In this document: piece by piece, positions 5,311-61,565 of the stretch
How the letters are laid out: every line of letters begins with the position of its first letter
How positions within the stretch are numbered: position 1 is the first letter of the stretch
Sequence record: PV611058.1
DNA: 64,000 bases
Strand: one strand, 5' to 3'
Program-made: the position numbers and the translations under genes
Notes under the pieces: generated by a model
What the model saw: the letters and a program-made list of their open reading frames with translations, nothing else
The model's database searches: none
Told to the model about the DNA's origin: nothing

Positions 5311-5418
5311 GTTTTACTTTACCATTCTTCATTGCTTTTTTACGGTCCACATGTGTTTGAGGTTTATTAAACTCATTCATATGCTTTTGTACAAAGTTGT
5401 TTACATTTTTAGCCATAC

Positions 5419-47743: not shown

Positions 47744-48067
47744 TTACATGTCTTTCTTACGTTTTACATCGTAGTAGCGAACTGTAATTTCTTTGTTGAT
47801 CTCTTTCTCAATTCTGTGTAGTACTTTCTCTTTCGGGTTGAAACCTATTACAGTTTCCTTAATGATTTCTAAACCCGTGTACTCGCCTTGTGTGCCGTAA
47901 CCGTATGTAAAGGTTTCGTGTCCCAGGTCTTCCCAGCGATCACCAATCAATGCGGACACGTAGCAGGAGTGGTAAGTATTGCCGTGGCTATCAGTCCACC
48001 GATTAACTTTAATGTCAAAGGAGGTTACAATTTTCAGTTCTACTTTCTGGGTAAGGATCATAGCCAT
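47744..48067 (-). CDS. hypothetical protein (paralogue of 55124..55447)
   Basis: RWTDSHGNTYHSC...TFTYGY shared. Confidence 0.75.
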   Translation of the reverse strand: MAMILTQKVELKIVTSFDIKVNRWTDSHGNTYHSCYVSALIGDRWEDLGHETFTYGYGTQGEYTGLEIIKETVIGFNPKEKVLHRIEKEINKEITVRYYDVKRKKDM

Positions 48068-48154
48068 TTTTATTTCTCTCTCTTTGTTAGGAGGGGAACC
48101 ATTCCCCTCGCTTGATGTAAACTATTATACAGTACTAAGATACTTTGTCAATAC

Positions 48155-48337
48155 TTATTTTTTGGAAAGTTTACGCATTAATTCTACGCTTTCTTGTGAA
48201 CGTTTTGCTACCTGGCAAGCTGTATGGGCAGTAAACATTTTTGTATAGTCTGACGCTTTGCCACCGAACCGAGCGGCACGTTCACGGGCACTTGGAACTA
48301 ATACTATTTCTTTATTACAGATAGTGCACTTAGCCAT
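48155..48337 (-). CDS. small putative zinc-binding protein
   Basis: CTIC...HTAC ligand pattern; own cassette. Confidence 0.7.
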   Translation of the reverse strand: MAKCTICNKEIVLVPSARERAARFGGKASDYTKMFTAHTACQVAKRSQESVELMRKLSKK

Positions 48338-48423
48338 TTTTATTTCTCTCTCTTTGTTAGGAGGGGAACCATTCCCCCTCTCGATGTAAACTATTATACA
48401 GTACTAAGATACTTTGTCAATAC

Positions 48424-48699
48424 TTAAGTATTGTAAATGTCGTGAATAGTGATAAAGTTTTTACGACCGTAAACATGTAAATCAGTATCAATGTAGTGCT
48501 TATCAAGTACATCCTCGACGCTTAAAGACGTGTCGTGAATATCTTCATAAAATTGTGGATCAACAATCGTGCTTAAGTCATCTGGCGTTAACTTATCGTT
48601 AAGGCATTGAACCGCCTGGATATCTGCTTCACGTTTCCATTGTTCCAGATTAGTAGTCAGTACTTGCTCGATTTCGTTAGCTGTAAGTAAAGTCCGCAT
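48424..48699 (-). CDS. small acidic hypothetical protein
   Basis: own promoter, AAGGA RBS. Confidence 0.7.
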   Translation of the reverse strand: MRTLLTANEIEQVLTTNLEQWKREADIQAVQCLNDKLTPDDLSTIVDPQFYEDIHDTSLSVEDVLDKHYIDTDLHVYGRKNFITIHDIYNT

Positions 48700-48768
48700 T
48701 TTAATGTTTCCTTATCAGTGGTTGATGTAAGTATTATACTCGTTTACTTTCTATTGTCAAACTATTTT

Positions 48769-48843
48769 ATCAGGGGAGTTTTTCGTATGTCTTACTCCTG
48801 GACTACTTAACGGGGTTACTTATTTCGTTCCCCGTCCTGATGT
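48769..48843 (-). ncRNA. family-2 structured RNA element
   Basis: own TTGCAT-N16-TATAAT promoter; ATCAGG/CCTGAT closing stem, two internal hairpins, loop AAGACATACGAAAA; no ORF. Confidence 0.55.
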
Positions 48844-48920
48844 AAAACATTATACTTGATTCTAAGTACAATGCAAGTACTTTTTTAAAAATAGTTTTCA
48901 GTACTAGCCACCAGCAAACA

Positions 48921-49005
48921 ATAGATACATTTATGCACCCTGTGGGCTGATTTGTTTCTATGCGTATATAATAGCAAAGGGACTGACCGGAGTCAATCCC
49001 TTTTT
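48921..49005 (-). ncRNA. family-1 RNA element
   Basis: TTGACT-N17-TATTAT; CA-GCCC-ACA-GGGT-GC-ATAAATGTATCTA. Confidence 0.55.
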
Positions 49006-49014
49006 CAAATATTT

Positions 49015-49164
49015 TTAAACTTCTTTCGGGTTGCGATATGTGATAGCGTTAGGGTACATTTGTTTAATGTTATTCCATGCCTGGTTAACATTATAACCAC
49101 TTGATCGAATCAGTTGGTTATTACCGACACCTTGAAACACTACTTCAAATAAGAATTCTTTCAT
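49015..49164 (-). CDS. small hypothetical protein (49 aa, below ORF-track cutoff)
   Basis: MKEFLFEVVFQGVGNNQLIRSSGY...; GAGG RBS; overlaps upstream stop. Confidence 0.55.
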   Translation of the reverse strand: MKEFLFEVVFQGVGNNQLIRSSGYNVNQAWNNIKQMYPNAITYRNPKEV

Positions 49165-49334
49165 GCTTTCACCTCGCTATCTGCTTTGCCTTTACGCCAG
49201 GCCGTTGCTAATTGTTCGCGTTGCCATAAGTCGAGTGATACGTAAAGTTTTGCATTATCACCCTTCGGATATTCGCCAGTAGTACCAATCCGATAAAACA
49301 GATCTTTCAGTACTGTTAATTCTACCTGGACCAT
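49161..49334 (-). CDS. small hypothetical protein
   Basis: start moved to MVQVE. Confidence 0.65.
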   Translation of the reverse strand: MVQVELTVLKDLFYRIGTTGEYPKGDNAKLYVSLDLWQREQLATAWRKGKADSEVKA

Positions 49335-49420
49335 TATACTTTCCTCTTTGTTCGGAGGGGAACTATTCCCCTTCCGATATAAAACATTATACACTTTATT
49401 CAGTACTGTGCAAGTACTTT

Positions 49421-49633
49421 TTAATCTTTCAGCCAATGATCCTGAATGAATTTTTCACCGGAACCTTGCTGCATTGATTGTAACAGACGTTCGCGATGAG
49501 CGGCGGCGAATTGCTCAGTACTATGCGTTACACCTGGTTGATATCTGGATTCACCATTGGGGGCGATGTATTGTACATCCCACGGTTTTTCGTTAGTATC
49601 AGACCATTTACGAACGATTAGTTGACCTTGCAT
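49421..49633 (-). CDS. small hypothetical protein
   Basis: own cassette, GAGGA RBS. Confidence 0.7.
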   Translation of the reverse strand: MQGQLIVRKWSDTNEKPWDVQYIAPNGESRYQPGVTHSTEQFAAAHRERLLQSMQQGSGEKFIQDHWLKD

Positions 49634-49716
49634 TTTTCTTTCCTCTTAGTGGGGAGAATCATTTCTCCCCTTCATGTAAACTATTATACAGTACTGGATT
49701 GCATTGTCAATAGTTT

Positions 49717-50040
49717 TTATTCACCTTGTTTGAATTTAGTTTTCTGCATTGATTCCATGATTGCAACCAATACGCCGTGGATCTCGCTTAACGCGGAATC
49801 ACTAAAAGCATTAATGAATAGTCGATCATTCTCGCGAATATTTTTAATGTACTTTTCAGCAGTAGTTGCGAATTCATTCAACGGTAGATCAAATGCTTTA
49901 TCCCATGATGGATGGCGTAATTGTAACAGTACTGGATTATCACGATCACCAGGGGAAAACGTACCAGTGATGAAACATACGCCCGGAATACTTTCGAACT
50001 GGCAACGGACTTCCTTTGTGATAGTAGTATGAATGTACAT
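49717..50040 (-). CDS. hypothetical protein
   Basis: GAGGA RBS. Confidence 0.7.
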   Translation of the reverse strand: MYIHTTITKEVRCQFESIPGVCFITGTFSPGDRDNPVLLQLRHPSWDKAFDLPLNEFATTAEKYIKNIRENDRLFINAFSDSALSEIHGVLVAIMESMQKTKFKQGE

Positions 50041-50067
50041 TTATTGTTATCCTCTATTAAATTAATA

Positions 50068-50256
50068 TTACAGTTTATGAATTAATTCTTTATCTAAGCG
50101 ATAGCGTACATTATTAATGGTAACAGCATTATTTTTAATGCTACGCTGTACGGGTCCACCAGCAATAACAAACGTTGCTTTATTGCCCCGAACAATGATA
50201 GCACTTCCAGGATTACCGAAATCATCTTGTACTAAAATACTTGATAAGTTTTCCAT
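50068..50256 (-). CDS. small hypothetical protein
   Basis: own cassette, GAGGA RBS. Confidence 0.7.
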   Translation of the reverse strand: MENLSSILVQDDFGNPGSAIIVRGNKATFVIAGGPVQRSIKNNAVTINNVRYRLDKELIHKL

Positions 50257-50334
50257 TTTTATTTCCTCTTAGTAGGGGAAGATGTTTCCCCTTGATGCAA
50301 GTACTATAACAGTACTGAAAACTAAATGCAAGTA

Positions 50335-50691
50335 CTATGATAAAATCATGATAGGATATTCACTATCTATCAATACCTCGAATCCGAAACCTTCGTACCA
50401 TTCTTTAAGATTAAAGGCGTTATCTTCTCCCGTATCGCATTCTAAGATGATACAATCTGAATCATCGGCGGCATCAATAAAGGCATTCATTAATTCGTTA
50501 CCTTCACCATTGCCCCGACTATCAGGATCAACATAAAGAGAATCAATAAACGCTACACGGTCATAATCAAGATCCGGTGCAATGATTCCACGTTTAACAA
50601 ACCAGTACTGCAATTGTGCTACTTTGCCCTGTACCTGATAGCCAGTGATCTCGCCATTGTCAGTAGTACGCGTGATATGTTGTATTCCCAT
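50335..50691 (-). CDS. GNAT-family acetyltransferase
   Basis: FIDSLYVDPDSRGNGEG (acetyl-CoA binding R-x-x-G-x-G motif) and LKEWYEGFGF. Confidence 0.8.
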   Translation of the reverse strand: MGIQHITRTTDNGEITGYQVQGKVAQLQYWFVKRGIIAPDLDYDRVAFIDSLYVDPDSRGNGEGNELMNAFIDAADDSDCIILECDTGEDNAFNLKEWYEGFGFEVLIDSEYPIMILS

Positions 50692-50754
50692 GATTACTAT
50701 CCTCAGTTAAGATATAAAACATTATACACTATCTTTCAGTACTGTCAATACTTT

Positions 50755-51012
50755 TTATCTCATAGATCTATGCCAACAATTACGCGGATCTCTTTTAAAA
50801 GTACTATCATGATCCTCCTGGCAAGTAATACAATACATGCACCCTATAACGGCCTGGCGTCGATTCTCAGGGATTTTATCGCCGCAGTCGCGGCAATGTA
50901 CAAGTGATTCTCTTTGTGCGTTAATTTGCTTTCTAGCGTGGTTAACGGCGGCCTGAATCACTGCATGAATCTCGTCTTGTTCGGCCCCGTCTTTCGCGTA
51001 TCCTACTGCCAT
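50755..51012 (-). CDS. TraR/DksA-family C4 zinc-finger protein
   Basis: CRDCGDKIPENRRQAVIGCMYCITCQE zinc finger; acidic N-terminal DGAEQDE coiled-coil tip region. Confidence 0.85.
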   Translation of the reverse strand: MAVGYAKDGAEQDEIHAVIQAAVNHARKQINAQRESLVHCRDCGDKIPENRRQAVIGCMYCITCQEDHDSTFKRDPRNCWHRSMR

Positions 51013-51267
51013 TATTTTAACCTCATTATAAAAATACTATAGTACTGTAATGCTACAATAATACTACTAGTGTTTATCTTATTCAAACCATATGATACTA
51101 CATATCCACCAGCATTACCACGGATAGTAACGCCTTTGTACTGTCTATATAAATTCAACTGCGTATATTGCCTTTGATCAAGAATTGATCAGAATTATAC
51201 GCCTTATGCTAAATTGATCCAGTACTTTTTTGATCATTTATTGATCGATATTATATAGTTACATTTG

Positions 51268-51338
51268 TGCACCCTATGGGTTAGTGACGTTCTCGTCTTG
51301 ATGTAAGTATTATGCCAGTACTGGAGGATATTGTCAAT
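51268..51338 (-). ncRNA. family-1 two-hairpin RNA element
   Basis: TTGACA-N17-CATAAT; GAC-GAGAAC-GTC-ACTA-ACCC-ATA-GGGT-GC. Confidence 0.6.
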
Positions 51339-51341
51339 AGA

Positions 51342-51545
51342 TTATTTTAATTTTTTTCTGTCATTGATTAATGCTTTCAGTACTATACTAATAACTTGCA
51401 ATGATTCATCAATGACAATGAAATTATTCTCTTTCATTAGATGATAGTTACCATTGATTGTATATTCTAACGAGTACTGTTTACGTTTAATTTTTGATAA
51501 TGTTTCTATTTGTTTTTGTACTGATTTCATGCTAATCATTGTCAA
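51342..51545 (-). CDS. small hypothetical protein
   Basis: 67 aa ORF. Confidence 0.55.
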   Translation of the reverse strand: MTMISMKSVQKQIETLSKIKRKQYSLEYTINGNYHLMKENNFIVIDESLQVISIVLKALINDRKKLK

Positions 51546-51610
51546 ACGTCCTGTAACGCATTCTAACGAGATAAACGGTTGAGTACTGGCATTGTATAGG
51601 GTAAATGATT

Positions 51611-51638
51611 AAAGCCCACCAGCGTTAACCAGTGGGCT
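51611..51638 (-). terminator. terminator hairpin (AGCCCAC family)
   Basis: AGCCCAC...GTGGGCT; related to 56525 and 57262. Confidence 0.6.
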
Positions 51639-51644
51639 ATAATA

Positions 51645-51788
51645 TTACATCTTGCGGATAATCTTAACAGTATCTTTCACCGATTTACCGTTTTGCTGAC
51701 ATTGCTCGATCATCGCGTATTGTTCTGCGGTCAGATCCTCGCCAGTTTTTGCCAGTACTGCGTCGATGAATGAATCCAGTGCGATCAT
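51645..51788 (-). CDS. small hypothetical protein (47 aa)
   Basis: MIALDSFIDAVLAKTGEDLTAEQY...; own promoter; terminator follows. Confidence 0.6.
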   Translation of the reverse strand: MIALDSFIDAVLAKTGEDLTAEQYAMIEQCQQNGKSVKDTVKIIRKM

Positions 51789-51878
51789 TTTGTTTCTCTC
51801 TTAGGTTAAGTTAACTACTGTTTATAAAACTTATTATACAGTACTATCAAACTATGTCAATAGTACTGGTAATATATT

Positions 51879-52058
51879 TTAGCGGTAGTCGTCGTATGCT
51901 TTATTCACCTGGCGAATATAACTTTCAAAGGCTTCGTCTACCGTTTCATACTCCCGAACATAATCACCATATGAAACTACATACATACCTTTTTGATCTT
52001 CAAACGTCATGATGATAGAATCCAGACCAACGATTTCAGTTTTTGCGATGATAGCCAT
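51879..52058 (-). CDS. small hypothetical protein (59 aa)
   Basis: MAIIAKTEIVGLD...; own promoter, AAGGA RBS. Confidence 0.6.
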   Translation of the reverse strand: MAIIAKTEIVGLDSIIMTFEDQKGMYVVSYGDYVREYETVDEAFESYIRQVNKAYDDYR

Positions 52059-52141
52059 TTTTTAATTCCTTAGTAGTGTAGTTGATAAAAGTTATTATGT
52101 CAGTACTATCAAACTATGTCAATAGTACTGTGATAATATTT

Positions 52142-52354
52142 TTAGTTAATGATAGTCAGTGTAAAATTGTAATCACCGCAGCGATATAGCACGTTATTCC
52201 CAAATGTCCCAACTAATCGCACATCACACAAAACGCCGGTTTTTTCTTTTACTTCCTTGATACTTGTAACTCCTGTAATATCTTTATTAAAGTATTCATG
52301 ATCTGAAAATAAAACTTGTTTTGCATTTTTTAATTTCGACCGGATATTAGCCAT
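52142..52354 (-). CDS. small hypothetical protein
   Basis: own cassette. Confidence 0.7.
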   Translation of the reverse strand: MANIRSKLKNAKQVLFSDHEYFNKDITGVTSIKEVKEKTGVLCDVRLVGTFGNNVLYRCGDYNFTLTIIN

Positions 52355-52450
52355 TTTGTTTTCTCTCTCTGTTAGTGGGGAGAAGTTTTTCTCCCCTTGA
52401 TGTAAACTATTATACAGTACTATAATCTATTGTCAAACTATTTTTTTATA

Positions 52451-52792
52451 TTATTCGAAATCTTCTGGACCGGACTGATAATCATCTTCACCGTATGCAC
52501 TTTCTAACCGCTCGCCAGTGTGATCATCAGTTAGTGAGTCATCCTCATAGTTCACGTCTACGCCAGTGATGTAAAACTGGCTATCGTCTGGATCATTGAA
52601 ATTAATTTTTTGGATGTTTACAATAACTGTATTGATACCCAGGACACCGCCATCAGCCGTTACAAAGTACTGATATTTTTCACAACCGCCTGAATTGAAA
52701 CCGTAATTAATTTCGGCCCGACCATCATTTAAACGCAGTGCCTGGGCGATGATTTCATTTTCAAAGTTAGATTGAGCAATTGAGATAGTCAT
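52451..52792 (-). CDS. hypothetical protein (VNYEDDSL...ESAYGE motif)
   Basis: own cassette, AAGGA RBS. Confidence 0.75.
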   Translation of the reverse strand: MTISIAQSNFENEIIAQALRLNDGRAEINYGFNSGGCEKYQYFVTADGGVLGINTVIVNIQKINFNDPDDSQFYITGVDVNYEDDSLTDDHTGERLESAYGEDDYQSGPEDFE

Positions 52793-52874
52793 GATTTGTT
52801 TCCTTATTACCAGGGGAAACCGTTTCCCCTTTCGATGTAAAACATTATACGCTTATCAGGAAGTAATGCAAGTA

Positions 52875-53342
52875 CTATTTCACGTTAATTTCAAAGTACT
52901 GCTCTTTGATGTTTTCCTGTTGGTAAATCTCGTTTAATGCTTTAAGATCTAAAACCTGTTTACCTGCTGCCTGAATATACTTTTTAAGAGTCGCTAACAG
53001 CTTCTCAGGCGTGTTTGTAGTCTTACGTGTTGGGATCTTATCGTGCCCCATAGCGTAGTACTGCTTACGTGCTATAGTACTGATAACACTGCGGTACGGT
53101 TCCATGATCAGCTTGTCTGTGTATTCGTCGCTATCCCCAAACTTCATACCGTGGATCGCAAAGGTCATCATCATGCGGTCGTTATCGCGGATATTGTGGG
53201 GGCAGTCGGCAAGCTCGCGAGTCAGTGACATAGTGATCCCCACGTCGCCACCCAGCGGTAAAGGTCGGGCGATAAAGAAACCGTTAGGGAATACTTTCAG
53301 GAAGTTTTCTTGAACTGCTGCGACGAATTCGATGCTATTCAT
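52875..53342 (-). CDS. hypothetical protein
   Basis: own cassette, AAGGA RBS. Confidence 0.75.
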   Translation of the reverse strand: MNSIEFVAAVQENFLKVFPNGFFIARPLPLGGDVGITMSLTRELADCPHNIRDNDRMMMTFAIHGMKFGDSDEYTDKLIMEPYRSVISTIARKQYYAMGHDKIPTRKTTNTPEKLLATLKKYIQAAGKQVLDLKALNEIYQQENIKEQYFEINVK

Positions 53343-53464
53343 AATTCATTTCCTTAATTAGTGGGGGAAGTTGTTTCCCCTCTCGATGTAAAACATTATA
53401 CGCTTATTGAGATAGTTTGCAAGTACTTTTTAAAAATAGTTTTCAGTACTCAATACTTATATAA

Positions 53465-53553
53465 TAGATACACTTATGCACCCTGTGGGCTAGTGAGCTA
53501 TCTCTCAATGAATATATAATAGCAAAATGGCTGACCGGAGTCAACCACTTTTT
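53465..53553 (-). ncRNA. family-1 two-hairpin RNA element
   Basis: TTGACT-N17-TATTAT; GAG-AGATAG-CTC-ACTA-GCCC-ACA-GGGT-GC-ATAAGTGTATCTA. Confidence 0.6.
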
Positions 53554-53697
53554 TCATTTATTTTTAGCTTTTAGAATCGCCGCCTTTCGCGTCATGCCTT
53601 GCTTGATGTATTCCTGTACTTTCGCTTTACGTGCATTCGCTTTATTTGCTTTCGTAAACGCCGAACAACTTTTATAGTTTAAACCTGTTGGATTCAT

Positions 53698-53787
53698 TTA
53701 AATCACCATAAAGAATAGATAGGTTACTAACAACGCCGCGATCAATGCACCGACCAGGGCCGAACTATAGTAAGCTAATGTTTTCAT
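53698..53787 (-). CDS. small hydrophobic peptide (29 aa)
   Basis: MKTLAYYSSALVGALIAALLVTYLFFMVI; single predicted TM helix; overlaps upstream stop. Confidence 0.45.
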   Translation of the reverse strand: MKTLAYYSSALVGALIAALLVTYLFFMVI

Positions 53788-53936
53788 TTTTTAGCCTGAA
53801 AATAATGTTTAATTTGTGCGGCGGTCAGTGCACAATTACGCAGGAAGTTTTCTGTATAACTTTTGCGAGTACTGAAAGAGAATTGACCTTTGCCGTTGCC
53901 GATAGTAACATCAAACCGAGCGTTGTATTGTTTCAT
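53784..53936 (-). CDS. small hypothetical protein
   Basis: start moved to MKQYN (AGGAG RBS). Confidence 0.65.
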   Translation of the reverse strand: MKQYNARFDVTIGNGKGQFSFSTRKSYTENFLRNCALTAAQIKHYFQAKK

Positions 53937-54017
53937 TTTGTTTCTCCTGTTATTGGGGAGAATCATTTCTCCCCTTCATGTAAACTATTATACAGTACTA
54001 AAAACTAATTGCAAGTA

Positions 54018-54164
54018 CTATTTTTTAGATTTACGCAAACTTTCTACCATCTCAGGAGTAAGGCCCGGCGGGTAGGAAACTACTTCATCAACGAAACGTA
54101 AAGGGAATACCCCATCTAAGGTTGAACGTGCTTTCTTGTTAGTACTCTTTTTTGATGCTTTCAT
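54018..54164 (-). CDS. small basic hypothetical protein
   Basis: start moved to MKASK (AAGGA RBS). Confidence 0.65.
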   Translation of the reverse strand: MKASKKSTNKKARSTLDGVFPLRFVDEVVSYPPGLTPEMVESLRKSKK

Positions 54165-54234
54165 TTCATATTCCTTAAAAGTGAGGCGGGAACTATTCCC
54201 GCTCTCGATGTAAAACATTATACGCGTTTAAAAA

Positions 54235-54444
54235 CTAATTGCAAGTACTATTTGAAAGTAAATGCTCATACGCTGCATTAACTACGTTTTCAATAACCGA
54301 CTGTACAGAAAGATCCCCCACGTCCTGGCTATAGTAGAAATCGCTTACAGTAGTGTCATCGTATGCAAATACTTTACCAGGTACTGCATCAATCACATAC
54401 ATATTAACCTTTAAGATGTCGATCTTATCCTGTACAGTAAGCAT
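54235..54444 (-). CDS. small hypothetical protein
   Basis: 69 aa ORF. Confidence 0.65.
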   Translation of the reverse strand: MLTVQDKIDILKVNMYVIDAVPGKVFAYDDTTVSDFYYSQDVGDLSVQSVIENVVNAAYEHLLSNSTCN

Positions 54445-54449
54445 ATTAA

Positions 54450-54722
54450 TTAACCTTTTAAGTACTGGCTTAAGTAGTCTTGTTGATCTTCGGTGATTGC
54501 AGCCATCTTCCCTAGTACTGGATTGATGATATAATCCCCTGTAACGTCCTGTAACGCATTCTCAGGCGGTTTAACGGCTGGGGTAGCCATAGCCATTGCC
54601 TGGACTTGTTCGACGCTATAACGCTCATATAGGCGGCATTCTTCCGGTGTTAACATAGCATCAATGCGTTTCATTGGTTTAATGATGCTTTCGATCTCAT
54701 TCAGTACTTGATTAACGTTCAT
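54450..54722 (-). CDS. small hypothetical protein
   Basis: GGGG RBS. Confidence 0.65.
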   Translation of the reverse strand: MNVNQVLNEIESIIKPMKRIDAMLTPEECRLYERYSVEQVQAMAMATPAVKPPENALQDVTGDYIINPVLGKMAAITEDQQDYLSQYLKG

Positions 54723-54773
54723 GGTATAATCCCCAATATAAGCGGCCTAAATCGACCGCTAACGATGTTTTGA

Positions 54774-55043
54774 TTAATAGGTGTATGGTTGACGTTCAAA
54801 CAATGATTGCACGTTGTACGCCCCGCTTATGGGCTTTGCTGGTAAATCAATTTTATATTGCTCACGCTTAAAGATAATAAAACGGCAATTGTTTTTAACA
54901 TCAAAATTGATTGAACGTTCCAGTAGTTTACCATCGTGCACAAATACAAGATAACCGCTTGGTACTTGTTTTGTAGTACTGGTTGCAACCATAGACCGCC
55001 GAACATGTGTACCTGCGTCGATTAAAGTACTGATATTTTTCAT
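54774..55043 (-). CDS. small hypothetical protein
   Basis: GAGGA RBS. Confidence 0.65.
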   Translation of the reverse strand: MKNISTLIDAGTHVRRSMVATSTTKQVPSGYLVFVHDGKLLERSINFDVKNNCRFIIFKREQYKIDLPAKPISGAYNVQSLFERQPYTY

Positions 55044-55123
55044 TATACGATCCTCTTAAGTTAATTTAATTTCTTTCCCCTATGCAGACACTATATCAAA
55101 GTATCTGCATAAAGTAAAGCTAA

Positions 55124-55447
55124 TTAAAGATCTTTTTTGCGTTTAACATTATGTACAGTACAATGCAACGGGATATTAAGATCATTGCACAAACGAGTAA
55201 GGGAGGTTTCATCAGTATTAAGCCCGTCTACTGATTCCTTTAATAGATCTAACGCCGTTTGTTGATATGCATCTTCATAGCCATAAGTAAATGATTCAAC
55301 CGCCAGATCATTCAAACCGTTATCCAGTTCAACGCTTACATGACAAGAATGATAAGTATTGCCATATGAATCAGTCCAACGTTTACCGTCAACATTGATT
55401 GCACGGATTGCAGCCAGGGAAACGGTGTTAATGATAGTTTTAGCCAT
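55124..55447 (-). CDS. hypothetical protein (paralogue of 47744..48067)
   Basis: RWTDSYGNTYHSC...SFTYGY; ends VKRKKDL. Confidence 0.75.
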   Translation of the reverse strand: MAKTIINTVSLAAIRAINVDGKRWTDSYGNTYHSCHVSVELDNGLNDLAVESFTYGYEDAYQQTALDLLKESVDGLNTDETSLTRLCNDLNIPLHCTVHNVKRKKDL

Positions 55448-55536
55448 TTTAGTATTCCTTAAATTAATATGTTGTCTTGATAAAATCTATTATGCCAGTA
55501 CTATCAAACTATGTCAATAGTACTGTGATAATATTT

Positions 55537-55749
55537 TTACTTACTTTCTTTCGCTGCTTTGTGCGTTGCCACTGCCATAACCACATCAGCACGAACAAAG
55601 TTTTTAACCGTGTCGCTGTAATAATTGATTGCTTCATCAATATCTGCGAACATCCGATACATACCGCACCAAGATACTTTATAACCTGCTTTCACTTGTT
55701 CAAGTTTAACCAGGGTTTTACTTACTTTGATTTTAGTGATGATAGCCAT
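55537..55749 (-). CDS. small hypothetical protein
   Basis: own promoter, GAGGA RBS. Confidence 0.7.
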   Translation of the reverse strand: MAIITKIKVSKTLVKLEQVKAGYKVSWCGMYRMFADIDEAINYYSDTVKNFVRADVVMAVATHKAAKESK

Positions 55750-55828
55750 TTTATTTTCCTCAGTTGTCTTGATAAAATCTATTATGCCAGTACTATCAAA
55801 CTATGTCAATAGCACTGTGATAATATTT

Positions 55829-55972
55829 TTACTTACTTTTTGCTTTCTTGATTGCTTCCACCTGGTCGGCCCATTCTTTACCCCATACTTGTAAATTATA
55901 ATGGTACTGGCAAAGAGCAACGCCCCGCTTTAAACCCGTAATAGATTTCTGACCACATTGACAAGTTTTCAT
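55829..55972 (-). CDS. small putative zinc-binding protein (47 aa)
   Basis: MKTCQCG...LCQYH; own cassette, AAGGA RBS. Confidence 0.6.
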   Translation of the reverse strand: MKTCQCGQKSITGLKRGVALCQYHYNLQVWGKEWADQVEAIKKAKSK

Positions 55973-56058
55973 TTTAGTTTCCTTGTAGTGGGGAGAACCA
56001 TTTTCTCCCCTTGATGTAATGTATTATACTTTATTCGATTTACTTTGCAAGTACTTTT

Positions 56059-56286
56059 TTAATTTAATTCATCAAGGCAAAGGATACGCTCAACGCCCAA
56101 ATCAGTTAAACTAATCGACGGCACTTGATAGGTTTCAATGTATGCTACACTTGCCCACTGACCGAACTCATTAACGGCCCAGGTATTCATTGCATTTTGC
56201 AATTCCGCACCTTCCTTGTTGGTAATGACTGCAACTACTTGTTCGTTGCCAGTAGTACCAGATACGCGAGTAATGATAATAGCCAT
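56059..56286 (-). CDS. small hypothetical protein
   Basis: start moved to MAIII (AAGGA RBS). Confidence 0.65.
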   Translation of the reverse strand: MAIIITRVSGTTGNEQVVAVITNKEGAELQNAMNTWAVNEFGQWASVAYIETYQVPSISLTDLGVERILCLDELN

Positions 56287-56523
56287 TGTTTTGATTCCTT
56301 TGATTTGGAAGGAGAACCGTTTCCCCCTCTCGATGTAAAACATTATACGCTAATCTCTTAATCGTGCAAGTACTTTTTATTACTTTTTGCAAAATACTTT
56401 AAACGCTCTCAATCGCGTTCTTACAGCCTTAACGCCACCAGCTAGGGCAATGCATCAGATAATCAGTTTAATGCGTTAGAATCGTTTCTAGGCGGTGCTG
56501 GTGGCCTGGTAAACGATAAACAC

Positions 56524-56552
56524 AAAAAAGCCCACCGTTTAAGGTGGGCTAG
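56524..56552 (-). terminator. intrinsic terminator
   Basis: AGCCCACC-ttaaac-GGTGGGCT plus T6. Confidence 0.75.
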
Positions 56553-56571
56553 TGATTCAGTACTTTAATTG

Positions 56572-57054
56572 TTATGCTTCAACTTTGCGATGTGCTTCGA
56601 TCCATTCCTCGCGAGTCATACCACTGGAGTTAATCGCGTCCAGTACTACCGCAATGCAGTTACCACGCACCGGAATCAGATATTCTTCCCCGTTGTCCAG
56701 TACTACCGCTACGCGTTCCTGAATCCATTTTTTGGCTTTTACTTCTGGCTTGTCTTCCCCATACTTAACCGCCAGGGCTTTTTGTGCCATCTCTGTAACT
56801 ACTTCCAGATCCAATCCAACTACTGCCGCCTGAATACTTTCGATTGTTGCTTGTAGTTCTGCTTCACGGGCCGCCTTTGCCGCTTCAATTTCTGCCGCTT
56901 TATTTGCTTGTAGTTCTTTCGCAGTACTATAAGCGATGTTAAAATTATTGCGTACCGCTTTCATGGTATCGTTATCCAGTTCAGCCAGGATCTCAGCCGC
57001 GACGTTAGTTTCATTTGCTACCAGTGCTTTGATGAATGATTTTACATTAGCCAT
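56572..57054 (-). CDS. H-NS/StpA-like nucleoid-associated protein (divergent)
   Basis: coiled-coil N-half AAEIEAAKAAREAELQATIESIQAAVVGLD, basic linker, C-terminal DNGEEYLIPVRGNCIAVVLDAINSSGMTREEWI aligns by eye with H-NS [33 protein letters not shown]; start moved to MANVK. Confidence 0.5.
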   Translation of the reverse strand: MANVKSFIKALVANETNVAAEILAELDNDTMKAVRNNFNIAYSTAKELQANKAAEIEAAKAAREAELQATIESIQAAVVGLDLEVVTEMAQKALAVKYGEDKPEVKAKKWIQERVAVVLDNGEEYLIPVRGNCIAVVLDAINSSGMTREEWIEAHRKVEA

Positions 57055-57104
57055 TTTATAAATCCTCAATTAAAGTTTAGTTTACGTTTATTAGTGTATC
57101 AAAG

Positions 57105-57175
57105 TTTTCTCGACGTGTCCAGTTTTTCGTTCGACTTACTGGCGGTCTACTTAGTGCTCCCCGTCTTGATGTAAT
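57105..57175 (-). ncRNA. family-2 RNA element (leader of H-NS-like gene)
   Basis: ACATCAAGACGGGGA...TAAGTAG...CCAGT-AAGTCGAACGAAAA-ACTGG; promoter TTGACA-N16-TAGAAT. Confidence 0.5.
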
Positions 57176-57257
57176 ACATTCTACGCTTTTCTGTGGTAAT
57201 GTCAACTACTTTTTTAAAACTATTTTCAAAGTATCTCAGTACTACGATACTACAAAA

Positions 57258-57282
57258 ACAAAAAAGCCCACCAGGTGGGCTA
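57258..57282 (-). terminator. intrinsic terminator
   Basis: AGCCCACC-t-GGTGGGCT core plus T tract. Confidence 0.65.
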
Positions 57283-57287
57283 TGTAC

Positions 57288-57518
57288 TTAATCAGTGAGT
57301 AAAATATTAAACACTTTACCATTTAACGTTATTGGTGCACTGCTACCAGGCTCAAGATCCGTTAGTATACCTGCAATCGCTTTATCATTGGCTACCTTTC
57401 CAGTGTCCAACAGAACTACAGTACTGATAAGATTAACGCTCGTTTCAATATCATAATGCACGGCGTTAAGTAGTTGTGTAGTACTGCTTTCGTTAAGTAA
57501 AACAATTCGCTTAGTCAT
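57288..57518 (-). CDS. small hypothetical protein
   Basis: GGGG RBS. Confidence 0.65.
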   Translation of the reverse strand: MTKRIVLLNESSTTQLLNAVHYDIETSVNLISTVVLLDTGKVANDKAIAGILTDLEPGSSAPITLNGKVFNILLTD

Positions 57519-57539
57519 GATGTTACCCCGTAGTATCTA

Positions 57540-57839
57540 TCAACGGCAATTAATAACGCCGGTATGCGTTACTTTCTCAGTATCCATTACAGTGACCGAA
57601 CCGCGTTTAGTACTGGCATCATAATAAATTGTTGTGCTACCGTTTTCGTCTTCTTCATGGAACGGGCCGTTTTTAAATGCTTCCGGCTGGATCTCTAAAT
57701 CCTTTAATACAATCTCGCCAGTTCTTTCATCGGTCATTGCAACAGTGCACTGAATGAATTTTTCACTACTTACATCTAATGACGCATTAACAGCGAAAGA
57801 GGAAACAGATAAAGCCAGGGCGATGATTGCAATTTTCAT
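57540..57839 (-). CDS. putative exported protein
   Basis: signal-peptide-like MKIAIIALALSVSSFAVNA; two Cys. Confidence 0.7.
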   Translation of the reverse strand: MKIAIIALALSVSSFAVNASLDVSSEKFIQCTVAMTDERTGEIVLKDLEIQPEAFKNGPFHEEDENGSTTIYYDASTKRGSVTVMDTEKVTHTGVINCR

Positions 57840-57923
57840 TTGATTATCCTTAGTTACCAGGGGGAACCGCTCCCCCTTGCGATGTAAAATATTATACAGT
57901 ACTAAAAACTAATTGCAAGTACT

Positions 57924-58160
57924 TTATGATTTTTTATAAAACATTTCAGCAGTGATATTTTTACCCGTTGGCTGTACTTTATCCAGAATTTTTTGATGTC
58001 CAGGGCGACCAAATGAATATGATCCGTAAACCGTAAACCAGTAGTTGCCATCAGTGTTTACATGTACAGCACAATAGGGTACGCCCCGCGATTCATCACT
58101 AGTAAAGTGTGATACAGTTCCCGTTACATTCGCAGACGTTGATTTGATTTGTTCGAGCAT
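57924..58160 (-). CDS. small hypothetical protein
   Basis: own cassette, AAGGA RBS. Confidence 0.7.
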   Translation of the reverse strand: MLEQIKSTSANVTGTVSHFTSDESRGVPYCAVHVNTDGNYWFTVYGSYSFGRPGHQKILDKVQPTGKNITAEMFYKKS

Positions 58161-58269
58161 TTTCTTATTCCTTAGTTACCAGGGGAACCGCTCCCCCTAT
58201 GCAAAACATTATACGCGTTTAAAAACTAATTGCAAGTATTTTAATAAAAAGTATTTGAAAAAATAGTTG

Positions 58270-58352
58270 TTGACAAGTGCATCCAGTACTGGCATAATTA
58301 CTACATCAAGACGAAACAGTCACTAACCCACCGGGTGCCGAGATCCGTCTAT
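58270..58352 (+). ncRNA. family-1 two-hairpin RNA element (plus strand)
   Basis: TTGACA-N17-CATAAT; GAC-GAAACA-GTC-ACTA-ACCC-ACC-GGGT-GC; faces the bidirectional hairpin at 58377-58402. Confidence 0.6.
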
Positions 58353-58404
58353 TAAATGATTCAGTACTGAAAAAGTAACGGGGAGTTATTATCTCCCCGC
58401 GTTG

Positions 58405-58626
58405 TTATTTTGTAAGGTATAAACAGAAGTCGCCTTTATTTGCTACGCCGCCAGTGTAACGCGATGAATAGTTAGAAACGTCCTGGACTTCTGCTATTAC
58501 CAGGGTATCATCATTCAATTCGTCGCAGAAGCAAACGGCTGGATCTTGTACGCCGATTTTGTCAGCATGTTCCCGCATAGATTTCACCAGTGCTTCCAGT
58601 TGGGAAAGAGTAGTGATATTAGCCAT
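58405..58626 (-). CDS. small hypothetical protein
   Basis: start moved to MANIT (GAGGA RBS). Confidence 0.65.
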   Translation of the reverse strand: MANITTLSQLEALVKSMREHADKIGVQDPAVCFCDELNDDTLVIAEVQDVSNYSSRYTGGVANKGDFCLYLTK

Positions 58627-58710
58627 TGTATTTTCCTCATTACCAGGGAGAACCATTTCTCCCTTTGATGTAAACCATTATACAGTACTGAAAACTAATT
58701 GCAAGTACTT

Positions 58711-58899
58711 TTAATTAAATTCCATAAAATCATTTTCAACGTGCACAACAATCTGATTATTTTTAAAGGACGCAGAAAACTCTATACAATCATAAACCGC
58801 TTTTTCTGTTACCAGACTATGAGCACCAATCGGATTAATTGGGGATTGAATTGTTTCAATCTCGTTACCTTGTTCATTAACGATTAAAATATTAAACAT
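58711..58899 (-). CDS. small hypothetical protein
   Basis: AGGAG RBS. Confidence 0.65.
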   Translation of the reverse strand: MFNILIVNEQGNEIETIQSPINPIGAHSLVTEKAVYDCIEFSASFKNNQIVVHVENDFMEFN

Positions 58900-58938
58900 T
58901 GCCGTTACTCCTGGATAGTGTTAACTCGATATAAAGTA

Positions 58939-59121
58939 TTATACGCCTTTATTGCTTAGTGTCCAGTGATCACGCATCATACGCCCCGCACGATCCCAGC
59001 TAGTAGGCATGGGTATGCCTTGCAATTCGTTAGGGGAGATCTCGACCTCGATCCCTACATCAATAACAGTCATTCCAGCTTTCGCAGCTTGCTCGCGGAT
59101 AACCTCAGATAATGTTGTCAT
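58939..59121 (-). CDS. small hypothetical protein
   Basis: own promoter, AGGAG RBS. Confidence 0.65.
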   Translation of the reverse strand: MTTLSEVIREQAAKAGMTVIDVGIEVEISPNELQGIPMPTSWDRAGRMMRDHWTLSNKGV

Positions 59122-59195
59122 GATTAAAGCTCCTGGATAGTGTTAACTCGATATAAAGTATTATACAGTACTGAAAACTAATTGCAAGTACTTTT

Positions 59196-59456
59196 TCAAT
59201 ATTGTTTGTCGTTGTCTTCCTCGATGAATTGACCGACGAAATGATCTACTTTCGCTTTGAGGCTTTTATAATCTTCTTCTACTTCCTTTAAACGTTCCTG
59301 GTAGTATTCCAGGGCTTGAATATACGCCGCCTCAGCAGTTTTTGCACGCATAGCTAAATTCATTCCACGCGTTTCATCAAATAGCCAATAACCATCGGTG
59401 CAATGACTGATAGATAATGATTTACTTAGTACTGTATAGGCAATTACTTTACTCAT
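59196..59456 (-). CDS. small phage hypothetical protein
   Basis: GAGGG RBS; C-terminal coiled coil. Confidence 0.7.
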   Translation of the reverse strand: MSKVIAYTVLSKSLSISHCTDGYWLFDETRGMNLAMRAKTAEAAYIQALEYYQERLKEVEEDYKSLKAKVDHFVGQFIEEDNDKQY

Positions 59457-59513
59457 TAGATAACCCTCAGTAAAGGCGGGAACTATTACCCGCCATTATC
59501 TCAGTACTGAATA

Positions 59514-59753
59514 TTACATTCCAACCATTGCAGCACGGATCGCAGTAGTGCTATACTTAAAGCCGTCCGGCGTTGTAGTAGTACCGTTGGCTTTTAATCT
59601 GCGGTACATACATTCCGCAGCAATATCTTTAGTTCTACTTTGTGCGATGCAACTTTGAGCAAGCCGATACAATGACTCACCGTTATTAATCCAAAGGCTT
59701 ACATTCCAATGAGTTTTGTTTTTGTGTCCGTTGTAAGTTTTAGTACTAGCCAT
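59514..59753 (-). CDS. hypothetical protein (HWNVSLWINN motif; paralogue of 61566..61805)
   Basis: HKNKTHWNVSLWINN and PDGFKYSTTAIRAAMVGM shared; start moved to MASTK. Confidence 0.75.
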   Translation of the reverse strand: MASTKTYNGHKNKTHWNVSLWINNGESLYRLAQSCIAQSRTKDIAAECMYRRLKANGTTTTPDGFKYSTTAIRAAMVGM

Positions 59754-59843
59754 TTTTAAATCCTCGTTTGAGCGGGGAACCACTCCCCGCCTCGATATAA
59801 AGTATTATACGCTTTTAAACTTAGTTTGCAAGTACTTTTTAAA

Positions 59844-60455
59844 TTAATATTCGATTGATTCTACTACGCCATCAATAACATTGAATTGATACTCGTTACC
59901 CTCAATCAGTGCCGTAATGTTTTCAGTAGTGAATTGATCCTCATATGCATTCTCTAAATCACGGTACAACTTGCGGGACAATTCACGAATAGTTTCAGTG
60001 AGTAGTTCCTCAAGCTCATTAACTAACTTTTCTTGTTTTGCGGTTAAATCAGTGTAAGCCGATTCAATGTACCCGCTTACCGTGTTTTCGTGTGCGTAGC
60101 GAGAGTGTGAACGTTCTACACTCATTGCCAAATCATCTTCATTCAACAAGTGACGGATAGAACGATATTTCGTTAACGCTTTAATCTTGCGTAAAAACTT
60201 CACTGCGTCCACGTTGTCAGTACTGATTGATGCACCGTCACCTTGCGACCAAAAACCACTGTATTGCAATTCAGCTTCATCTATGCCGTATTCTGGTAGT
60301 ACTGTTTCTTTATAGTACTCGATAACGCCCTCAGCAAAGAAATTATCCTCACATGAACGCTCACGATCCCGAACCAGTTCGATAGCCGCCGTTTTTTGTT
60401 CTGCGTTCAGTTCAGAAAAAGCCATAACAAAAGTAGTAGTAGTGATAGTTTTCAT
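59844..60455 (-). CDS. conserved hypothetical protein (YSGFWSQGDGAS motif)
   Basis: motif recurrent in phage/plasmid proteins, from memory often labelled antitoxin-like; function not established here. Confidence 0.7.
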   Translation of the reverse strand: MKTITTTTFVMAFSELNAEQKTAAIELVRDRERSCEDNFFAEGVIEYYKETVLPEYGIDEAELQYSGFWSQGDGASISTDNVDAVKFLRKIKALTKYRSIRHLLNEDDLAMSVERSHSRYAHENTVSGYIESAYTDLTAKQEKLVNELEELLTETIRELSRKLYRDLENAYEDQFTTENITALIEGNEYQFNVIDGVVESIEY

Positions 60456-60523
60456 TTTGTAACCCTCATTCAGTAGTTGATGTAAGTATTATACGCTTTT
60501 ACTTTCTATTGTCAAACTATTTT

Positions 60524-60600
60524 ATCAGGGGAGTTTTTCGTGTGCCTTACTCCTGGGCTACTTAACGGGAAGTTACTTATTTCGTTCCCCGTCCTGATGT
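60524..60600 (-). ncRNA. family-2 structured RNA element
   Basis: near-copy of 48769..48843 with loop AAGGCACACGAAAA; own promoter. Confidence 0.55.
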
Positions 60601-60680
60601 AAAACATTATACGCCTTTAAACATAGTTAGCAAGTACTTTTTAAAAATAGTTTTCAGTACTGAATAGTAAAAAAAAAGTA

Positions 60681-60765
60681 TTGACAGCATTATCAAGTAC
60701 TGGCATAATAGCTACATAAAGACGAGAAAGTCACTAACCCACCGGGTGCATAACTGTAACTATAC
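60681..60765 (+). ncRNA. family-1 two-hairpin RNA element (plus strand)
   Basis: TTGACA-N17-CATAAT; GAC-GAGAAA-GTC-ACTA-ACCC-ACC-GGGT-GC. Confidence 0.6.
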
Positions 60766-60780
60766 TAAACTACTTTTTCT

Positions 60781-60860
60781 ATAGATACATCTCCGCACCC
60801 TATGGGCTACGGCTTATCTGCCAATGAATACATTATGCCAGTACTGACAAAATAAGTCAA
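60781..60860 (-). ncRNA. family-1 two-hairpin RNA element
   Basis: TTGACT-N17-CATAAT; GGC-AGATAA-GCC-GTA-GCCC-ATA-GGGT-GC-GGAGATGTATCTA. Confidence 0.6.
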
Positions 60861-60894
60861 TACCGGCAATTGTAAATTTTTCAAAAAAATATGA

Positions 60895-61125
60895 TTATAC
60901 TGCAATCGCGTCCAGGCTGTAATAATAATAAGTGCCGTATTGGTGTACTTTATTACCTTTTATTTCAGTACTGAATGAATCCGAACGATTTGCATATGAT
61001 GTTAATTTAAAGTACTTTGATTTGCTGATACGTTGCCATACACCACAGATCCGCTGTAAGTAAGTAGTTTTATTCGTGGTAGTATCTTTTACGGTTTTAA
61101 CTTCAGTCATATACATATTAGTCAT
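60895..61125 (-). CDS. small hypothetical protein
   Basis: own cassette, GGAG RBS. Confidence 0.7.
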   Translation of the reverse strand: MTNMYMTEVKTVKDTTTNKTTYLQRICGVWQRISKSKYFKLTSYANRSDSFSTEIKGNKVHQYGTYYYYSLDAIAV

Positions 61126-61212
61126 TTTTATTACTCCAGGTTATAGGCGGGAAGAGTTCCCGCTCTCGATGTAAAACATTATACGCCTTTAAACATAGTT
61201 AGCAAGTACTTT

Positions 61213-61479
61213 TTATTCAAGTACTGCAATCTTTTTAGTACGGTACACGGTCACGCGGTTGCCCTTTCGGTCGAGCTTTATTTCTACCACTCGACGCGAT
61301 ACACTATCGGGACTTTTTAAGGCCGCTAACCAGTACTGTAATGATCTGGCGGTACTACGCTTTACAATGGCCCAACGTTTACCACGTTCCGATTGTACGC
61401 CCATATCTTTAAACGTTGCCCCGTCCTGGCGTGCGGCGATCCGAGCTTGTTCACGCGTCGCAAAATACTTAATATTCAT
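61213..61479 (-). CDS. hypothetical protein (paralogue of 47253..47648)
   Basis: FATREQAR...FKDMG...GKRWAI; DRKGNRVTVY; start moved to MNIKY. Confidence 0.7.
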   Translation of the reverse strand: MNIKYFATREQARIAARQDGATFKDMGVQSERGKRWAIVKRSTARSLQYWLAALKSPDSVSRRVVEIKLDRKGNRVTVYRTKKIAVLE

Positions 61480-61565
61480 GCTGTTGCCCTTATCGTTGGT
61501 GTATGAATAAAACACTATTATAAAGTACTATCGCAAAAAAATGATAGTACTTTAAATAAATTCTA

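Follow-up and report, generated by a model that had tools for sequence, protein, structure and literature searches.

Three repeated sequences in the early region of an Asteriusvirus jumbo coliphage are copies of one folded RNA module located at the start of early transcripts, and the same module, which is not catalogued in Rfam, lies between promoters A1 and A2 of phage T7 and in hundreds of T7-like phages; its function is unknown. The stretch of DNA analyzed here (the window; 64,000 nt from PV611058.1) is the terminal-repeat early region of this phage and is 99.7% identical to phage WPEC3. An earlier note, made from the sequence alone, had described three copies (48769-48843, 57105-57175, and 60524-60600), and this observation was confirmed, with all three found on the minus strand at these positions. 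Its interpretation as a protein- or RNA-binding module acting as an sRNA or cis-regulatory leader was only partly supported, as described below.

A 20-nt pattern for the hairpin and loop matched exactly these three sites, against 0.22 expected, and a covariance model (R1) run with filters off over all 64 kb gave scores of 57-58 bits for the three copies, while the next best match scored 9.8 bits. Each copy begins at the predicted +1 (48843, 57172, and 60600) of a strong sigma-70 promoter of the form TTGnnn-16/17-TA(T/G)AAT. The flip of the stem from GGAGU/ACUCC to CCAGU/ACUGG and the conserved loop AAG-N-C-NN-ACGAAAA are as the note described, and the closure by AUCAGG/CCUGAU into a three-way junction is the minimum-free-energy fold of copies 1 and 3. 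Copy 2 lacks the second hairpin and closes with GACG/CGUC, and its own fold is not better than shuffles (z = -0.15). The shared 5' sequence ACAUCA(G/A)GACGGGG, which the note had listed among the common features, is largely the generic start of about 30 early transcripts in this phage and is therefore not specific to this family. Positions of the features are listed in Table 1.

Table 1. Features of the three modules and their surroundings in the window (all on the minus strand).
Feature	Position	Description	Support
Copy 1	48769..48843	Whole module from predicted +1; closing helix AUCAGG 48841-48836 with CCUGAU 48774-48769; hairpin P2 48835-48810; UAAGUAG 48809-48803; hairpin P3 48798-48775, loop 48793-48780	58.1 bits; MFE -21 kcal/mol, z -3.16
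Promoter P1 of copy 1	48849..48876	TTGCAT, spacer, TATAAT; predicted +1 at 48843	
Second promoter behind copy 1	48733..48760	Consensus, 8 nt behind copy 1 (TTGACA-16-TATAAT, +1 about 48728); drives the 91-aa gene at 48699-48424 (phrog_14947, function unknown)	
Copy 2	57112..57172	Module without P2; closing helix GACG 57165-57162 with CGUC 57115-57112; UAAGUAG 57153-57147; hairpin P3 57142-57119, loop 57137-57124	57.4 bits
Promoter of copy 2	57178..57205	TTGACA-16-TAGAAT; preceded by an intrinsic terminator at 57281-57265	
160-aa gene	56572..57054	118-nt leader carries copy 2; C-terminus weakly resembles the H-NS DNA-binding domain; homologous genes follow the module in EJP2, Hallingskeid, and Munch; terminator at 56550-56529	
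Copy 3	60524..60600	Whole module; closing helix 60598-60593 with 60529-60524; P2 60592-60565; UAAGUAG 60564-60558; P3 60553-60530, loop 60548-60535	56.9 bits; z -2.39
Promoter P1 of copy 3	60606..60633	TTGCTA-16-TATAAT	
Second promoter behind copy 3	60488..60515	Consensus (+1 about 60483); drives the 203-aa gene at 60455-59844 (phrog_5162, function unknown)	

The model was also applied to other genomes, and the family was found to extend far beyond this phage. The core, which consists of single-stranded UAAGUAG, 4-5 nt, and a 5-bp hairpin (P3) whose loop of 14-16 nt (14 nt in the window copies) keeps UAAG-N-C-NN-A-Y-GAAA, also occurs at nt 549-590 of T7, where it scores 55.8 bits and has the same position behind a strong host promoter and in front of the next one. 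This inter-promoter region (nt about 536-593) is part of the non-coding "internalisation signal", and we found no paper or Rfam entry that describes it as an RNA element. The core is present in about 487 Studiervirinae records and once per genome in four other large-phage groups, and is absent from E. coli genomes, plasmids, and 185,579 prokaryote genomes, apart from one T7-like fragment in a MAG. In Rfam 15, no hit was obtained at gathering thresholds in the window, on the modules at E<=5, or at E<=1 in T7, Hallingskeid, Munch, LTH01, or L080.

The P3 stem has three covarying pairs, which are 100% paired in 23 distinct sequences, and P2 also covaries. In T7-like phages, the P2 loop forms a 5-bp pseudoknot with the five bases after P3 (GUCAA 541-545 with UUGAC 589-593 in T7), for which all five pairs show double, compensatory changes, 99.2% of cells are paired, and 0 of 500 shuffles were comparable; in T7 the latter five bases are TTGAC of the A2 -35 box. 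In the defined pairs, G.U was observed 20 times and A.C never, which points to RNA of the transcribed strand. By eye, no stretch complementary to the P2 loop was found in the 3' flank of the window copies, and the jumbo-phage copies close the same core with a nested helix instead and are therefore a structural variant, whereas the T7 type also has a separate 5' hairpin. A closing helix is predicted in every non-T7 type, with some compensatory shifts.

The module occurs only in virulent phages of Enterobacterales and always lies directly behind a strong sigma-70 promoter, but in front of different genes. It rides on repeated strong-promoter cassettes, about 30 of which were found in 42-63 kb of the window, resembling the PeSL promoter/stem-loop cassettes of T4-type phages, in which repeated strong sigma-70 promoters with G-tract/C-tract stem-loops flank small orphan genes and mediate modular exchange (PMC2839356). 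One whole unit (promoter, module, promoter, gene) is shared with Justusliebigvirus muut at 94.5% protein identity, and cassette-to-cassette joints are seen in related populations. The PeSL stem-loop, however, acts as a terminator or attenuator for transcription initiated upstream of the cassette, while here the hairpin lies in the transcribed leader just downstream of the +1, and the additional module is not part of PeSLs.

What the analysis itself establishes is that the three repeats belong to one family of compact structured RNA, that host RNA polymerase transcribes it as the first 60-90 nt of certain early transcripts, that the family includes the so far uncatalogued element in the A1 leader of T7 and its relatives, and that its cassettes are exchanged between unrelated coliphages; in this identity and structure we have high confidence. 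That the fold presents its conserved unpaired bases to a component conserved in enterobacterial hosts is, on the other hand, our inference. The most likely mode, in our judgement, is action as a nascent RNA on the polymerase that makes it or on its elongation factors, as put- or nut-like anti-pausing or anti-termination for polymerases starting at the first promoter of a tandem pair, but this mechanism is a tentative hypothesis and not a result.

A host-directed role independent of the downstream gene is suggested by the phage range and the varied gene contexts given above, and by the tandem pairs, in which the second promoter drives the gene without the module. In T7 the module lies about 340 nt upstream of gene 0.3, and the RNase III site R0.3 near nt 890 would then detach it from the 0.3 mRNA, which would argue against a cis effect on translation or stability of that mRNA. 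Concerning the put analogy, the HK022 polymerase-utilisation RNA putL is also a phage early-leader RNA of about 70 nt that begins at nt 3 of the transcript and has two stems, and putL/putR act without phage protein and independently of the downstream gene (PMC9378689). The model, however, found nothing in the whole HK022 genome at E<=10, and the module is therefore not a put homologue; put RNAs occur in temperate lambdoid phages, and resistance of the polymerase to termination in cis was not measured for the present module. A conserved linear box, a spacer, and a short hairpin with covarying stem and fixed loop is the syntax of nut sites, and in two T7-like contigs the module lies 24-30 nt before a boxA (GCUCUUUAACAA), with boxA downstream in most T7-likes. 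Nevertheless, the loop is not a GNRA-like pentaloop, UAAGUAG is not boxA, the rrn leader does not match the model, and no boxA was found on the transcribed strand of the window or within 450 nt in any non-T7 member. There are no functional data, copy 2 is a monocistronic unit bounded by strong terminators, which is an odd setting for an antiterminator, and E. coli polymerase is reported to terminate at the T7 early terminator in vitro. Contig ends in RNA libraries, described below, hint at processing instead.

Among the alternatives, two are possible but less likely, and nearly equal. In the first, the abundant early leader would act in trans as a decoy or sponge, titrating a host RNA-binding protein, a nuclease, a defence sensor, or a small signalling molecule during the first minutes of infection. 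It is made from the strongest and earliest promoters and lies in the DNA that enters first (near the left end in T7 and in the terminal repeat in the jumbo phages), is independent of the downstream gene and restricted to one host order, and has strongly conserved unpaired bases; but no partner is known, no similarity to host or plasmid RNA was found, and there is one copy per T7 genome and no terminator to release the RNA. In the second, the fold would be a site of specific cleavage, by a new small self-cleaving ribozyme or a host RNase, which would trim the promoter-proximal leader and leave a defined 5' end as a natural insulator. The size (45-75 nt), the pseudoknot, and the roughly 17 invariant unpaired bases resemble small self-cleaving ribozymes, which are common in phages, and contigs from RNA libraries end at the same motif position, the first A after G of ACGAAAA, in different cassettes (X4 ending at 57127 and two X11 records ending at 60538). 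Contig ends are not RNA ends, however, depth is low, a repeat-induced assembly break is expected only 3 nt away for copy 3, no Rfam ribozyme matched, and we know of no report of cleaved A1 transcripts in the long history of T7 A1 transcription. Small pseudoknotted riboswitches (e.g., preQ1 and guanidine-III) and ribozymes such as pistol are similar in size, pseudoknot topology, and a handful of invariant unpaired bases, but no expression platform is evident in the module and no ligand or cleavage has been shown.

It is rather unlikely that the module is a 5'-end stabiliser, in which the closing helix would sequester nt +3 to +12 and protect the mRNA from 5'-end-dependent decay by RppH and RNase E. 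The closing helix does involve the 5' end in all jumbo types, and about 30 other early leaders in the window carry a simple 5' hairpin at the same place; but because a plain hairpin already does that job there, this cannot explain the invariant loop and UAAGUAG, and the hairpin at the T7 5' end, the RNase III site, and the nearer promoters of the tandem units, which bypass the module, are also against it.

A gene-specific operator, bound by the product of the "H-NS-like" gene or another phage protein for autoregulation, is improbable. The P2-less module precedes homologous genes (31-51% identity) in Asteriusvirus, EJP2, Hallingskeid, and Munch-type phages, while its core stays near-invariant, but copies 1 and 3, the muut, A73, and LTH01 copies, and all T7-like copies precede unrelated genes; the T7 early genes annotated next to its module (0.3, 0.4, and 0.5) are unrelated, the rest of the T7 genome not having been searched for such a gene. 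The note's naming of the gene behind copy 2 as H-NS-like is only weakly supported. Pfam gave no H-NS hit, a four-sequence profile aligned the C-terminal 70 residues to the DNA-binding domain of E. coli H-NS with hhalign probability 58% (E 1e-4) and to PDB entry 2l93 with E 0.36, and the GQGR loop motif is not kept, so that these values leave its assignment to the H-NS family undecided.

A DNA-level element, either an UP-element or activator site of the downstream promoter or merely a recombination hot spot of the cassette, is very unlikely. By our own position count, the A-tract of the T7 loop falls at about -46 to -38 of A2, where UP-element proximal subsites lie, the pseudoknot 3' strand is the A2 -35 box, and cassette junctions in a DNA-type run fall in the shared promoter and leader; but the distance to the next -35 varies from 2 to about 40 nt, in two contigs boxA follows instead of a promoter, compensatory changes keep pairing and not half-site sequence, and the G.U excess is strand-specific. 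Least likely is the CsrA/Hfq/ProQ-binding sRNA suggested in the note: although CAGGA is present in copies 1 and 3 and the loop is A-rich, GGA lies in the stem arm of these two near-identical copies only and is replaced by CCAGU, CCUG, or CUUGU in copy 2, T7, and the other members, the ARN repeat pattern is not kept, and a discrete sRNA is not supported, since no terminator-like site (and hence no terminator hairpin for Hfq or ProQ) lies between the module and the downstream gene and transcription must run on into a second promoter and a gene. The remaining parts of the note's reading, a structured module in a 5' leader directly behind its own promoter and conserved unpaired bases that look like a binding surface, were supported.

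It is not excluded, though we consider it doubtful, that the module is a new class of functional RNA used by many virulent enterobacterial phages, T7 included, in the first seconds of infection, as a protein-independent modifier of host RNA polymerase unrelated to put, a new self-cleaving ribozyme, or an aptamer-type decoy for a host defence component, with its pseudoknot in T7 written over the -35 box of promoter A2.

T7 is one of the best-studied genomes in biology and its A1-A3 region is a standard tool for transcription research, and a covariation-supported pseudoknotted RNA in that region would therefore be an unexpected gap in knowledge, and one accessible to simple T7 genetics and in vitro transcription. 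The finding also bears on the design of therapeutic and synthetic phages and on the use of T7 A1 and A2 fragments as "plain" promoters. The element is conserved in hundreds of T7-like phages, has been passed to at least five unrelated groups of large coliphages, and is more conserved than the proteins encoded next to it, and its restriction to virulent phages of one host order points to a specific host target.

The part of the window from 48000 to 61500 is 99.7% identical to Escherichia phage WPEC3 (384 kb), and it also matches many other Asteriusvirus jumbo coliphages such as 121Q, PBECO4 and phAPEC6. By the coordinates of that match, window base 64000 falls on the last base of the WPEC3 record, and the same elements recur near the left end of that record. 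The region therefore lies in the long terminal repeat, and related records annotate the corresponding stretch as direct terminal repeats. On the minus strand between 42 and 63 kb, there are about 30 near-identical early units of one design, each consisting of a TTGnnn box, a 16-17-nt spacer and TATAAT, a transcript start reading ACAUC(G/A)AG, a 5' G-tract/C-tract hairpin of GGGGAGAA...UUCUCCCC type, a Shine-Dalgarno sequence and a small orphan gene. These repeated promoter/hairpin units resemble the PeSL cassettes of T4-type phages, and many joints between cassette positions, found in a DNA-type run of related phages, fit such shuffling and are consistent with cassette-mediated deletions and insertions between strains. 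WPEC3 and related records annotate DksA-like/TraR C4 zinc-finger proteins among the early genes of the stretch 48000-61500, and these are possible modulators of host RNA polymerase. Two copies of a 12-bp hairpin that encloses the -35 box of a TTGACT-17-TATTAT promoter-like site with a TG extension were also found, which may represent a different promoter class or a terminator/promoter overlap. No tRNA or tmRNA was found in the window. Coordinates of the features are collected in the table.

Coordinates of the RNA module and of related features in the window and in the sequences compared with it
Feature	Sequence	Position	Strand
Early promoter/hairpin units (about 30)	Window	42000-63700	minus
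Module copy 1 (with hairpin P2)	Window	48769	
Module copy 2 (without P2)	Window	57105	
Module copy 3 (with hairpin P2)	Window	60524	
Terminator and promoter of copy 2	Window	57155-57305	
Gene of the 160-aa protein	Window	56572-57054	minus
Homologous genes (160-208-aa protein family)	L016; L013; L015 (phage loci)	1599-2195; 1667-2293; 1658-2245	
Contig ends in the conserved loop	Window	57127; 60538 (twice)	
Joints between cassette positions, with examples	Window	57900-60700; 59726 to 60593, 58221 to 60692	
12-bp hairpins around a -35 box	Window	49003-48976; 53551-53524	minus
Leaders with a start like that of T7 A1	Window	56336; 48387	
Module core match	Yersinia phage phiA1122	nt 553-587	
Module	T7	nt 549-590	
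Host promoters A1 and A2 (annotated)	T7	498; 626	
Pseudoknot 3' strand	T7	589-593	
Initial transcribed sequence of A1	T7 (L011)	498-518	
Initial transcribed sequence of rrn P1	E. coli rrsH upstream (L142)	186-200	
Module followed by boxA	L080; L061 (IMG/VR T7-like contigs)	4111-4180; 5386-5450	

The three copies of the module lie where the earlier note placed them, and its observation is confirmed. A 20-nt pattern for the hairpin and loop hits only these three sites, against 0.22 expected. The covariance model R1, which was built on the core and run without filters over the whole window, gives 58.1, 57.4 and 56.9 bits, while the next best match scores 9.8 bits. Copies 1 and 3 fold, as minimum-energy structures, into the three-way junction that the note described, consisting of the closing helix AUCAGG/CCUGAU, hairpin P2 and hairpin P3 (z-scores of -3.2 and -2.4). 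Copy 2 lacks P2 and closes with GACG/CGUC, and on its own it folds no better than shuffled sequence. The shared 5' end is mostly the generic start of this phage's early transcripts, and P2 occupies the place of the ordinary 5' hairpin.

The family is much larger than the window. The core of copy 2 matches Yersinia phage phiA1122, and the T7 sequence itself carries the element between the annotated host promoters A1 and A2. The T7 stretch finds 487 phage records, essentially Studiervirinae, whose hosts include Escherichia, Klebsiella, Salmonella, Yersinia, Enterobacter, Citrobacter, Serratia, Erwinia, Pantoea and Morganella, and one is an Aeromonas phage. The module is also present in Justusliebigvirus (muut, outra and EmilieFrey), in Vequintavirinae (A73 and LTH01), in the jumbo phages Munch and fENko-Kae01, and in Erwinia phage Hallingskeid. 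A covariance search in related phages had been proposed in advance as a way of checking the family, and the model finds exactly one copy in each of muut, A73, Munch, Hallingskeid and T7. A first pattern search of IMG/VR returned only chance matches inside coding sequence, whereas further IMG/VR and metagenome scans added more T7-like contigs and two jumbo contigs. Some of the metagenome loci carry "human gut metagenome" in their names, but they are T7-like phage contigs. A second, degenerate copy next to the T7 boxA was not detected by the model.

Outside phages, the element was searched for in Rfam (no match), E. coli K-12 (best E value 2.9), 5,426 complete E. coli genomes (none), plasmids (none) and 185,579 prokaryote genomes, where there is one hit, a T7-like fragment in a MAG. 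It therefore belongs to virulent phages of Enterobacterales. Mimicry of host RNA was also considered, because the loop resembled 16S rRNA around nt 55-65 and the rrn leader. However, the E. coli sequence shows only about 10-nt identities with two variants, the family consensus differs, and the model scores these sites at 1.6-4 bits, so that the resemblance was rejected as chance. In a separate comparison, the initial transcribed sequence of T7 A1 (AUCGAGAGGGACACGGCGAAU) resembles that of rrn P1 (AUCGACACGGCGGAU) and also the ACAUCGAGAGGGGGA start of the jumbo phage's early transcripts. T7 shares further features with rrn operons, namely tandem promoters about 125 bp apart followed by boxA.

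In 23 distinct sequences, three of the six P3 pairs switch between C-G, G-C, U-A and A-U, and every cell is paired; sliding the partner by one column drops pairing from 91% to about 40%. The P3 loop keeps U-A-A-G, C, A and Y-G-A-A-A, and a possible inner pair G-Y tolerates C to U. A hairpin (P2) abuts the 5' side of UAAGUAG in 82% of distinct instances, against 37% in shuffles, and its pairs covary in 25 distinct T7-like sequences. In those same sequences, five bases of the P2 loop pair with the five bases starting 2 nt behind P3, forming a pseudoknot. All five pairs show double compensatory changes, 99.2% of cells are paired, and no shuffle of 500 reaches any measure. In T7 the 3' strand of the pseudoknot is UUGAC, the first five bases of the A2 -35 hexamer, and in phages where that hexamer is altered the loop has changed to match.

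The jumbo types enclose the same core with a nested helix that uses nt +3 to +12 of the transcript. This closing helix is predicted in every type, with some compensating shifts between close relatives. Each single case is only weakly significant (p 0.04-0.27); its support comes from the recurrence in every type. A free hairpin search with wobble pairs, run as a strand test, gave no clear outcome and was replaced by counts on fixed pairs. Within the fixed pairs of the T7-like alignment there are 20 G.U cells and no A.C cell, which is the signature of RNA from the transcribed strand and not of a DNA cruciform.

Every member lies directly behind a strong sigma-70-type promoter and on the sense strand. 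Usually a second promoter follows, at a distance from 2 nt (T7) to about 40 nt (Munch and Hallingskeid). In two T7-like contigs, L080 and L061, a boxA follows after 24-30 nt instead of a second promoter, and this is the only arrangement that links the module physically to a known antitermination signal. Most T7-likes have boxA further downstream, but no non-T7 member has one and the window has none, and an obligatory partnership with boxA was rejected. The downstream genes differ between members; copies 1 and 3 precede genes of 91 and 203 aa of unknown function. The unit of promoter, module, promoter and 91-aa gene is shared with muut at 94.5% protein identity, indicating recent exchange between families.

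The P2-less type, to which copy 2 belongs, precedes homologous genes in Asteriusvirus, EJP2, Hallingskeid and Munch-type phages. The proteins are only 31-51% identical, yet the module core is kept, and the RNA is therefore under stronger constraint than the protein. These proteins form a family of 160-208 aa, conserved in at least three jumbo-phage lineages, with a coiled-coil middle, and the family always has the module in its leader. The earlier note had called the gene behind copy 2 H-NS-like; its C-terminus weakly resembles the H-NS DNA-binding domain, but Pfam does not confirm this.

For expression, assembled contigs were examined, from which no starts, ends or levels can be read. In three RNA libraries, depth over the terminator and promoter of copy 2 is 0 to 0.5, falling to about zero upstream of its +1, while the module and gene are covered; a DNA-type run covers everything. 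This agrees with a start at the predicted promoter but proves no more. Contigs from two RNA libraries end at the homologous loop nucleotide in different cassettes, which may hint at processing between G and A of ACGAAAA or may be an assembly effect.

Our analysis shows that the element is a compact RNA fold that host polymerase transcribes first, that it is conserved across unrelated phages of one host order, and that it is not tied to one gene. We infer that the invariant unpaired bases are a recognition surface for a conserved host component. RNase III cuts the T7 early transcript at R0.3, near nt 890, and that cut would detach the module from the 0.3 mRNA. Because in tandem units the nearer promoter bypasses the module and in T7 RNase III would remove it, a cis role in translation or stability of the downstream mRNA is unlikely to be the general function. 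The interpretation in the earlier note, a binding module acting as an sRNA or cis-regulatory leader, is only partly supported.

What remains is an effect on the polymerase that makes the RNA, a function of the RNA itself, or processing, and none of the readings has been tested. Nascent-RNA action on the elongation complex, in the manner of put or nut, is placed first, but only tentatively. A decoy or sponge and, almost level with it, a cleavage or processing module are both possible but doubtful, and a 5' stabiliser is less likely still. A gene-specific operator is improbable, as is a DNA-level element; an UP element of the next promoter was rejected as a general explanation because the spacing varies. 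A CsrA/Hfq sRNA is the least likely.

The module works most like put or nut in placement and syntax. However, it does not qualify as a member of either class: it shares no homology with put, no boxA is present in the window, and it has no pentaloop. Full-text literature searches found no description of the element, although we cannot exclude that older T7 papers noted the conserved sequence, and a search on Asteriusvirus early transcription returned nothing relevant. One recent paper treats the T7 region simply as a non-coding internalisation signal. Structured early-leader RNAs of phages are already known, and we regard the module as one of these which differs from put and nut in the above respects and matches no Rfam family. 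There is a real chance that it is a new functional class.
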